From contig NC_068989.1 of the NCBI RefSeq assembly GCF_001194135.2, positions 7,329,187 through 7,379,447 of the forward strand: a DNA stretch of 50,261 nucleotides, read 5' to 3'. A program made the position numbers and the translations under genes. Numbering within the stretch: the stretch's first letter is position 1; each line of letters begins with the position of its first letter. This DNA is from Octopus bimaculoides. Its lineage: Eukaryota. The notes beneath the pieces were generated by a model. It made no database searches and was not told the DNA's origin. It worked only from the letters and a program-made list of their open reading frames with translations. Of the stretch, positions 49,187-50,196 are shown piece after piece.

Positions 49187-49322
49187 CCGTTTGGTGAATA
49201 TCAGACACCTTTCGTTATATAAACTTCTGATGCTATATGCTGTGTTGAGAGCTTTGTTTTGTTCCAATTTCTCCAGAAGAATATCAAGGCATATATACGC
49301 CCCAGTAGACCCAGCACCAGCT
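49187..49322 (-). CDS. PTP D1 exon (P-loop to Q-loop)
   Basis: tttcag|A GCT..CGG|gtttgt, 136 nt; AGAGSTGAYICLDILLEKLEQNKALNTAYSIRSLYNERCLIFTKR. Confidence 0.9.
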
Positions 49323-49622
49323 CTGAAATATAATGGTAATGTTCTTCATTGTTAAACAAATTCAAAATTCACAAAAATAATTTATTCAAACTCTTCTTTT
49401 ATCGTTTATCTTTTACTTGTTTCAGTCATTAGAATGCGGCCATGCTGGGGCACCAGCTTGAAGAAACTCAGTCAAACAAACCTGCCCTAGTACAAATTAT
49501 TTTTTTAAGCCCTGTGCTTATTATATTAGTCTCTAAGGGACATGAACACATCAACACTGGTTGTCAAGCAATGGAGGGGGATAACGACAGACATAAAGAC
49601 ATGCACTCACAGATATATAAAC

Positions 49623-49671
<49 letters not shown>

Positions 49672-49959
49672 CTCGTTTACTCCTATACTTGTTCCAAGCC
49701 AAGTGAAATCATAGCTGTGGTCGTTACCAGTGACATGTAAATGGCACCTGTGCCGGTAGCACATAAAAAGCACCCATTGCACTCTCAGAAGGCGTCCAGC
49801 TGCAGAAACCACGCCAAAATAGGACTGGAACCTGGTGCAGCTCTCCAGCTTACCAGTTCCAGTCAAACCGTCCAACCCATACCAGCATCAAAAGCAGACG
49901 TTAAATGGTGACGACGACAATGATGATGATGATGGTGGTGGTGGTGGTGGTGATGATGT

Positions 49960-50008
<49 letters not shown>

Positions 50009-50038
50009 CTAGTTAAAAAACAGTTACTCATCACTCAC

Positions 50039-50196
50039 TTGCTTTGAACAACAATTGGATATTTCAAATCACTGCAAGAGTTGACTTTCTGGCGAAAGTT
50101 TAGAATATATTCTGGTTTTGATGGATTCATTCCTTCAGGCCAACCAGTGAAGTTGTATTGTGTTATTGTGCGGCTGACAAAAGGTTTAGATTTGGG
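50039..50196 (-). CDS. PTP D1 exon (WPD-loop to P-loop start)
   Basis: ttgcag|CCC..AGCAA|gtgagt, 158 nt; PKSKPFVSRTITQYNFTGWPEGMNPSKPEYILNFRQKVNSCSDLKYPIVVQS(K). Confidence 0.9.

Follow-up and report, generated by a model that had tools for sequence, protein, structure and literature searches.

The octopus locus and its membrane-proximal phosphatase domain

In our study, a 50,261-nucleotide stretch of the Octopus bimaculoides genome (contig NC_068989.1, positions 7,329,187 to 7,379,447; hereafter the window) was found to contain, on its minus strand from 50261 to 39579, the 3′ two-thirds of a gene for a tandem receptor-type protein tyrosine phosphatase (RPTP; the phosphatase fold is abbreviated PTP) whose two PTP domains both lack residues essential for catalysis. 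The window ends inside the gene. Ten exons (50196 to 39579) encode 392 codons with canonical AG/GT sites and consistent phases, in which exons 4 and 5 compensate each other's phase (Table 1). The C-terminal ~45% of the membrane-proximal domain (D1) lies in the window, followed by a linker and the complete second domain (D2). The protein ends with ...NESHYAEVKK, which resembles the tails ...SDYANFK and ...FDHYAT known from tandem RPTPs. All coordinates are window positions unless the locus of the orthologue in Octopus vulgaris (L001; OX597822.1) is named.

The interval 49187-50196 contained two exons and a 716-bp intron. The joined minus-strand segments 50196-50039 and 49322-49187 gave one open frame of 98 codons, PKSKPFVSRTITQYNFTGWPEGMNPSKPEYILNFRQKVNSCSDLKYPIVVQSKAGAGSTGAYICLDILLEKLEQNKALNTAYSIRSLYNERCLIFTKR, with the boundaries tgcag and gtgagt around exon 1 and tttcag and gtttgt around exon 2. 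The spliced product reads ...FTGWPEG...YPIVVQSKAGAGSTGAYICLD...RCLIFTKR. The 98-residue peptide matched positions 131-219 of 234 of the Pfam profile Y_phosphatase (PF00102; E 7.4e-18, 65.5 bits), a check that the initial annotation had proposed, and aligned without gaps to D1 of CD45, PTPRA and PTPRS. The intron that splits the D1 P-loop shares its position and phase with the D2 intron and with two O. bimaculoides paralogues (P0003 and P0157, described below). The same intron was found to hold (CAT)n and (CA)n microsatellites (49920-50008 and 49626-49664).

In classical PTPs, the P-loop cysteine is the nucleophile, the P-loop arginine binds phosphate, the histidine tunes the cysteine, the aspartate of the WPD loop is the general acid and the Q-loop glutamines position water. 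In the alignment, Gln51-Ser52 of the octopus peptide stood at the His-Cys of VHCSAG, Ser58 at the P-loop Arg, Glu21 at the WPD Asp and Thr96 at the first Q-loop Gln. D1 was thus found to read VVQSKAGAGSTG at the place of the signature (I/V)HCxxGxxR(S/T)G of competent PTPs. The WPD loop was WPE in both octopus species, without the general-acid Asp, and the Q-loop was IFTKRAQLEF compared with QTxxQY, so that of the two required glutamines the first was replaced by Thr and the second retained. The substitutions of His by Gln, Cys by Ser (AGC) and Arg by Ser (TCT), the change of WPD to WPE and the loss of the first Q-loop Gln had been read from the same letters in the initial annotation, and all of them were confirmed by the spliced translation, the D1 alignment and the O. 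vulgaris codons.

Compared with solved tandem RPTPs, the fragment encoded by exons 1 and 2 was by score closer to D1 than to D2 (63 vs 26 bits for CD45 and 51 vs 40 bits for PTPRA). Because of these scores, the D2-like scores of the second fragment and the tail typical of tandem RPTPs, the dead domain was assigned to D1. The linker and D2 downstream, together with the full-length architecture of the O. vulgaris protein, agree with this assignment, and the view of the initial annotation that the gene is a tandem RPTP with a dead D1 was upheld.

The second fragment of the gene product had its best matches in the D2 domains of PTPRA and PTPRE, with 45 bits for D2 and 21 bits for D1 of PTPRA, and it covered positions 33-232 of 234 of the Y_phosphatase profile (93 bits). 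D2 reads FWKD... MPIAVHCRGNYFKSG ... LILTDPTLYTYC. Its P-loop, HCRGNYFKSG, retained His-Cys in O. bimaculoides and contained Lys instead of Arg, which departs from the signature of competent PTPs. The WPD loop was WKD, with the Asp present and the Pro lost, and both glutamines were lost from the Q-loop (LILTDPTLYTY). The KNRY/PYDxxRV segment was absent from D2 and is missing from D2 across the cephalopod family. D2 was called dead because of the Arg to Lys substitution, the lost Q-loop and the absent KNRY segment, with the Cys still present in O. bimaculoides. The P-loop of D2 was found to be a local hotspot of change: HCRGNYFKSG of O. bimaculoides and HNRCGYFESG of O. vulgaris differ at four of seven residues (41454-41452 and 40783-40769), compared with 26 differences over all 392 residues, and the O. 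vulgaris Cys stands two positions later. Such a P-loop is evidently unconstrained and therefore provides a separate line of evidence against D2 being an enzyme.

The AlphaFold2 model of the linker and D2, made from a 20-sequence alignment, had a predicted local distance difference test (pLDDT) value of 83.5 and a predicted template modelling score (pTM) of 0.84; its template modelling (TM) score to solved PTP domains was 0.65-0.75. Confidence was low only in residues 57-80, where the N-terminal part is degenerate, and in the C-terminal tail (288-294). D2 is accordingly modelled in silico as a PTP fold.

An extra D2 exon for the KNRY...DYINAS segment was sought between 45933 and 44731. The candidate 45015-44857 (CDTLKARNFSAPPY...FYTCFLSIA) ended in a stop and had no donor. 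It was rejected together with a second candidate, 44892-44833 (PARSKSILYMLPQHSITSLQ), because the KNRY segment is absent family-wide in cephalopods and exon 5 (...NFEISLIE before GY) aligns to DYINASFID before GY. The O. vulgaris gene model equals the window model in length, which also argues against an extra exon. A tblastn search with a PTP1B query was too insensitive to pick up D2.

Conservation between two octopus species

HMMER, run exhaustively against 1.84 billion representative proteins, found CAI9728057.1 of O. vulgaris (833 aa), with a single 392-residue alignment and 93% identity. The other matches reached no more than about 40% identity, which fell to some 30% or below across the full query length. 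When a word-indexed protein search was run with the 98-residue peptide it gave no match, and with 354 residues it returned only a 609-aa gene model of the window itself, for which no genomic locus is recorded (P0001; UniParc UPI0006956AA4). A further protein search yielded nothing beyond O. bimaculoides paralogues whose D1 is active; a second orthologue was not among them.

CAI9728057.1 was found to contain a Cys-rich ectodomain followed by one transmembrane helix (SLIVVCVILLVICLVMIYKY), D1 and D2. The ectodomain is short and Cys-rich/EGF-like, without a Pfam match. The end of D1, the linker, D2 and the tail of the tandem architecture are present in the window, and the ectodomain and transmembrane helix were seen in the O. 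vulgaris orthologue only; it was through this orthologue that the upstream exons, whose retrieval the initial annotation had suggested, could be described. Locus L001, which belongs to an independent long-read chromosome-level assembly, runs collinear with window positions 50261 to 39123 and shares its convergent neighbour gene with scavenger receptor cysteine-rich (SRCR) domains.

In D1 of O. vulgaris, KNRY was substituted by KNRF and KCxQYWP by DYVQHLP. The CAI9728057.1 model jumps from ...DYINASYIH to PDYVQHLP... and leaves out the YIATQGP, DFWRMVW and IVMLT motifs. Two unannotated exons were found in L001 (Table 1), which together make 114 nt (38 aa), so that their skipping stays in frame. 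Either the annotation is wrong here or a real isoform exists that lacks 38 residues of the D1 core. With both exons restored, the rebuilt O. vulgaris D1 matched positions 1-233 of 234 of the Y_phosphatase profile (188 bits), and two signatures of the fold, IVLLT and the P-loop glycine backbone, were kept. The structural core of D1 is well preserved, because the rebuilt domain matches the Pfam model from end to end.

All ten exons were equal in length in the two species with zero indels, and all 18 internal AG/GT sites were kept. No stop, frameshift or indel was found over the 1,176 coding bases in either species. The codons of the D1 pseudo-active site were identical, namely CAA AGC AAA (Gln-Ser-Lys), TCT and GAA, and the sole difference in the P-loop was Ala/Thr at one position. 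The intactness of ten exons, frame and splice sites asserted in the initial annotation was thus borne out in two species. The introns contained thousands of gap columns between the species and were roughly 10-25% diverged where alignable. The intron identities from global MAFFT alignment were noisy (56-91%, with large indels and repeats) and were used for the indel contrast only; local blastn high-scoring segment pairs had 80-90% identity.

We examined the ratio of nonsynonymous to synonymous change (dN/dS, omega) by the pairwise method of Nei and Gojobori (NG86) for the 392 codons of O. bimaculoides and O. vulgaris, with bootstrap 95% confidence intervals (CI) and the Fisher test. The dS was 0.190 and the dN was 0.032, which gave an omega of 0.167 (CI 0.095-0.274; Fisher p 1e-12) for all 392 codons. 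The omega of the D1 part (115 codons) was 0.098 (CI 0.016-0.316; p 5e-5), and that of D2 was 0.274 (CI 0.128-0.573; p 1e-4). The protein identity of 93% between the species compares with 84-91% for pairs of active paralogues, whose orthology is putative. The defining combination of a pseudophosphatase, lost catalytic residues together with purifying selection, was therefore found in this gene, as the CI of omega excludes 1 and the exons and splice sites are conserved.

Table 1. Exons and substituted catalytic codons of the octopus RPTP homologue (window positions; L001, O. vulgaris locus)
Feature	Position	Strand	Description
Exon 1	50039..50196	-	158 nt; D1 from WPD-loop region to P-loop start, PKSKPFVSRTITQYNFTGWPEGMNPS...KYPIVVQS(K); length, splice sites and codons equal in O. 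vulgaris (L001 54363-54520)
WPE	50142-50134	-	TGG CCT GAA; Glu for general-acid Asp
Gln for His	50046-50044	-	CAA
Ser for nucleophile Cys	50043-50041	-	AGC
Lys after Ser	50040-50039 + 49322	-	codon split by intron
Exon 2	49187..49322	-	136 nt; remaining D1 P-loop and following helices, (K)AGAGSTGAYICLDILLEKLEQNKALNTAYSIRSLYNERCLIFTKR
Ser for P-loop Arg	49309-49307	-	TCT
Thr for first Q-loop Gln	49195-49193	-	second Q-loop Gln kept (Q100, exon 3)
Exon 3	47432..47581	-	150 nt; D1 end AQLEFVYDVITESMM (second Q-loop Gln kept) and D1-D2 linker to ...SIADRQFM
Exon 4	46688..46754	-	67 nt, ends in phase 1; linker and degenerate D2 start, DILQPVCQGNSIHSDLLEELYS(D); low AlphaFold2 confidence
Exon 5	45933..45979	-	47 nt; (D)ERNMSTTNFEISLIE, D2 counterpart of ...DYINASFID before GY
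Exon 6	44609..44731	-	123 nt; D2, GYEEDKFILAISPDQEEIPEFWNIITKEKCLTIVTFRDLSN
Exon 7	42194..42325	-	132 nt; D2, ENTSYLPTAIGQSLNFGQFDLELINFIDKELFQCSVLRVSYTKE
Exon 8	41450..41598	-	149 nt; D2 WPD-loop counterpart FWKDKTELPP to MPIAVHC(R); D2 Cys codon TGT at 41454-41452
Exon 9	40646..40784	-	139 nt; remaining D2 P-loop (R)GNYFKSGLFCAIY..., Lys (40771-40769) at Arg site; ends ...SQPLILTDP, Q-loop Gln lost
Exon 10	39579..39656	-	75 nt and stop TGA (39581-39579); TLYTYCLNAVKASLRNESHYAEVKK*; C-terminus typical of tandem RPTPs
Unannotated O. vulgaris D1 exon	L001 47217-47241		DKKYISTQ(V); canonical splice sites
Unannotated O. vulgaris D1 exon	L001 49233-49321		canonical splice sites; phase compensates 47217-47241

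Cephalopod relatives and neighbouring sequence

The nearest relatives of the window gene formed a cephalopod clade with 90% bootstrap support, which contained Sepia (Acanthosepion) pharaonis and octopus proteins. The clade shares the reduced D2 (HCxxxxxKSG, without KNRY) and a ...Y.YCW.VA... tail, and most of its members contained a canonical D1 with HCSAGVGRTG and WPD. One O. bimaculoides paralogue, XP_014769029.1 (P0003, annotated as 'PTPRT-like'), was found to contain WPE and PIVVQS in D1 with the Arg kept, VVQSSNGVGRSG (QSSNGVGRSG). The Gln-Ser of this paralogue uses the CAA AGC codons of the window gene and is interrupted by the same phase-2 intron; an active paralogue contains CAT TGC there. 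XP_014769029.1 and the window gene share ~30% identity and both have a dead D2 (VHGSDGMKKSG in the former), whereas the P-loop Arg of D1 is retained in XP_014769029.1 only. In the neighbour-joining tree, XP_014769029.1 grouped with active copies (72% bootstrap) and not with the window gene, which stood on a long branch. The Gln-Ser of the two genes may reflect either shared origin or convergence.

XP_014769029.1 lies at 5291933-5344108 of CM046614.1 and P0157, which has an active D1, at 5557416-5590606, ~250 kb apart in O. bimaculoides; this proximity suggests a tandem cluster of the cephalopod RPTP family. A gene model of 691 aa with an F5/8 type C domain lies directly upstream of XP_014769029.1 and may be its detached ectodomain. 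Among the 150 best matches, about six (~4%) had an inactivating change in the D1 P-loop. Single changes were found in the invertebrate tandem RPTPs P0035, P0087, P0110 and P0115, with HSSAGIGRTG, HCSAGVGSTG, HCSAGVGQTG and HSSAGAKRTG. A dead D1 is therefore uncommon, though not unique, among invertebrate RPTPs, and natural inactivation of D1 appears to be a recurrent event, at a level of a few percent. Our literature search found no paper on the window gene or on cephalopod PTP expansions.

The plus strand of the window from 566 to 35200 contained a long array of SRCR domains, each split over two exons, with the C-terminal half reading IWLDNVNCxGxExSIxxC...DAGVxC. A scan for motifs recovered 17 exons that each encode half a domain (11 N-terminal and 6 C-terminal halves), and more were present in the list of open reading frames. 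Two spliced examples matched Pfam SRCR with E 1e-29 and 1.6e-30. The SRCR gene converges tail-to-tail with the PTP gene, and a 1603-aa SRCR protein is likewise encoded downstream of the O. vulgaris orthologue. The array is not the ectodomain of the phosphatase homologue, because it lies on the opposite strand.

The repeats of the window were cephalopod-like and comprised elements resembling short interspersed elements (SINEs) as well as arrays of (CA)n and (CAT)n; N gaps interrupt the sequence at nine places. In the last intron of the PTP gene, an assembly gap is bordered by a 14-bp tandem repeat, GTGAACCATGGTGG, with ~35 copies (39742-40508), which is the origin of the bogus FTHHGSPTTVHPP 'exon' in P0001. 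This model, the only public one of the window gene, starts at the first exon in the window and was rejected as an ab initio artefact. Its 'exons' from SINE-like and tandem-repeat DNA (minus strand 48954-48700, 45422-45240 and ~40500-40150) encode HCLTTDASVFMS...RERERER, EGNTSIETLPDQFGAWCSH...DDDDDDDD and the FTHHGSPTTVHPP repeats. Both public gene models of the locus are wrong in detail. Its annotation in the databases consists of automatic names alone, and those such as 'PTPRO' or 'non-receptor type' hide the non-enzyme status of the protein.

A probable receptor pseudophosphatase and its possible role

The window gene very likely belongs to a known class, the receptor pseudophosphatases, with an independent origin in cephalopods. 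Human PTPRU, a receptor PTP of the R2B type with tandem D1 and D2 that are both inactive, was proposed to be a competitor that binds the substrates of PTPRK (Hay et al., 2020; PMC7320164). It is described as the only human RPTP with two pseudophosphatase domains. PTPRU encodes a conserved receptor with two inactive domains, as the window gene is predicted to do, and both have active close paralogues. In PTPRU, D1 still contains the catalytic Cys as well as CX5R, and structural rearrangements account for its inactivity, whereas the octopus D1 has lost the Cys, Arg, His, WPD Asp and one Q-loop Gln outright. The ectodomains are unrelated, with MAM-Ig-FN3 in PTPRU and a short Cys-rich/EGF-like region in the octopus protein. 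The octopus inactivation took place independently of PTPRU, in a cephalopod-specific family, and the common ground is the PTP fold only.

PTPRN and PTPRN2 (IA-2 and phogrin) are transmembrane proteins in which the PTP fold is conserved and the activity on phosphotyrosine has been lost through substitutions in the WPD loop and P-loop. Unlike the octopus protein, they contain a single PTP domain with the Cys and Arg retained, have another ectodomain and are proteins of dense-core vesicles. A sequence search of the PDB with D1 gave E values of 1e-13 to 1e-14 for PTPRN/PTPRN2 (2i1y, 2qep), compared with 1e-25 for tandem RPTPs. An intact fold that carries WPE and degenerate P- and Q-loops is the usual signature of the membrane-distal D2 in LAR, PTPRA, CD45 and PTPRG/Z, whereas in the octopus protein this signature sits in the membrane-proximal D1. 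The octopus D2 is more reduced than the known D2 domains, as it is devoid of the KNRY/PYDxxRV segment.

Taken as a whole, it is probable that the window contains a maintained octopus gene for a single-pass RPTP homologue, with both PTP domains non-catalytic, which acts as a non-catalytic scaffold or competitor. That the gene is maintained and that its two domains are catalytically dead is very likely, judging from the codons and the substitution rates; scaffolding or competition as the specific mechanism, which is suggested by analogy, has roughly even chances. The protein would work without catalysis, and a non-catalytic role is proposed because catalysis is impossible and the Arg that clamps phosphate is gone. 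It may be a membrane-anchored scaffold or competitor that would use surfaces away from the active site to bind either its active cephalopod paralogues or the partners of these. Active paralogues are present in the same genomes.

Several points weigh against this reading. The measure of selection comes from one species pair and is an average over both lineages, and the gene is known in both species from genomic sequence. The N-terminal half of D1 was seen in O. vulgaris only; if the transcript in fact lacked the two skipped exons, the fold of D1 would be incomplete. The step to a scaffold or decoy is drawn by analogy with PTPRU. The long branch of the window gene in the family tree, the four of seven residues that differ in the D2 P-loop between close species, the repeat-derived exons that pad the older public model P0001 and the failure to find a transcript for the locus would all suit a copy that was inactivated recently, or was never expressed, and is now turning into a pseudogene; its dead sites would then be due to the relaxation of constraint that follows duplication within a lineage-specific family. 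Such decay is nevertheless very improbable, because the reading frame, the exon lengths and the 18 splice sites are kept without a stop, frameshift or indel, and because omega is low (0.17, with a CI of 0.10-0.27 that excludes 1, and 0.10 for the dead D1 itself), whereas the introns are full of indels and 10-25% diverged.

The odd codons might also be thought to come from assembly or sequencing error, or to be corrected in the mRNA by A-to-I editing, so that the protein would really be an active phosphatase. The window is a gapped draft with nine N runs (3,769 N), and coleoid cephalopods, which are known for extensive A-to-I recoding, edit many neural transcripts in this way. However, the independent O. 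vulgaris assembly carries the same CAA AGC AAA ... TCT and GAA codons, which excludes an assembly error, and the codon logic leaves no lost residue that editing could restore: AGC would become GGC (Gly and not Cys), TCT contains no A, CAA does not give His and GAA does not give Asp. The chance that this explanation is right is negligible. As far as the genomic data of two species allow, assembly error and pseudogene decay, two of the refutations named in the initial annotation, were thus both set aside, and its proposal of a maintained double pseudophosphatase was sustained by the shared codons and an omega far below 1.

D1 might instead be a module that binds phosphotyrosine or another anion, comparable to STYX or to a PTP with a Cys to Ser mutation; as such a natural 'substrate trap' or reader, it would sequester phosphoproteins. 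The replacement of Cys by Ser is the one classically known for trapping, the Gly-rich backbone of the P-loop (AGAG.TG), a source of amide NH ligands, is kept under strong constraint (omega 0.10 for D1), a Lys is newly present beside the Ser (QSK), and P0003 shares the Gln-Ser yet keeps the Arg. In classical PTPs, however, the P-loop Arg (R221 of PTP1B) is the main phosphate ligand, and in the window gene it is Ser in both species; in addition, WPD is changed to WPE, the Q-loop Gln to Thr and, in O. vulgaris, the KNRY Tyr, which stacks on the phosphotyrosine ring, to Phe. Because of these changes, phosphate-independent scaffolding or competition was judged likelier than a trap, which we regard as improbable, though less so than decay into a pseudogene. 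The initial annotation had made the same guess, for which the known role of the P-loop Arg is the ground.

A wider and more tentative proposal, which we think rather doubtful as it stands, is that the window gene and XP_014769029.1 represent an octopod subfamily of non-catalytic receptor 'phosphatases', which would have arisen from one ancestral inactivation, the common change of CAT TGC to CAA AGC, in a cephalopod-specific RPTP family. Its members might be dominant competitors or co-receptors, similar to PTPRU, that tune signalling by the active clustered paralogues, and the D1 pocket of the window gene might have lost phosphate recognition and possibly gained a new ligand.

Pseudoenzymes are frequent in lineage-specific expansions, and no general principle is changed by the present gene. 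Beside PTPRU, it would be an independent natural example whose membrane-proximal domain has lost the nucleophile and the phosphate clamp, with purifying selection that appears at least as strong as on the active relatives. It supports the view that the intracellular domains of RPTPs have selectable non-catalytic functions, and it offers a clean case, without possible residual chemistry, for asking which surfaces of the PTP domain carry such functions.

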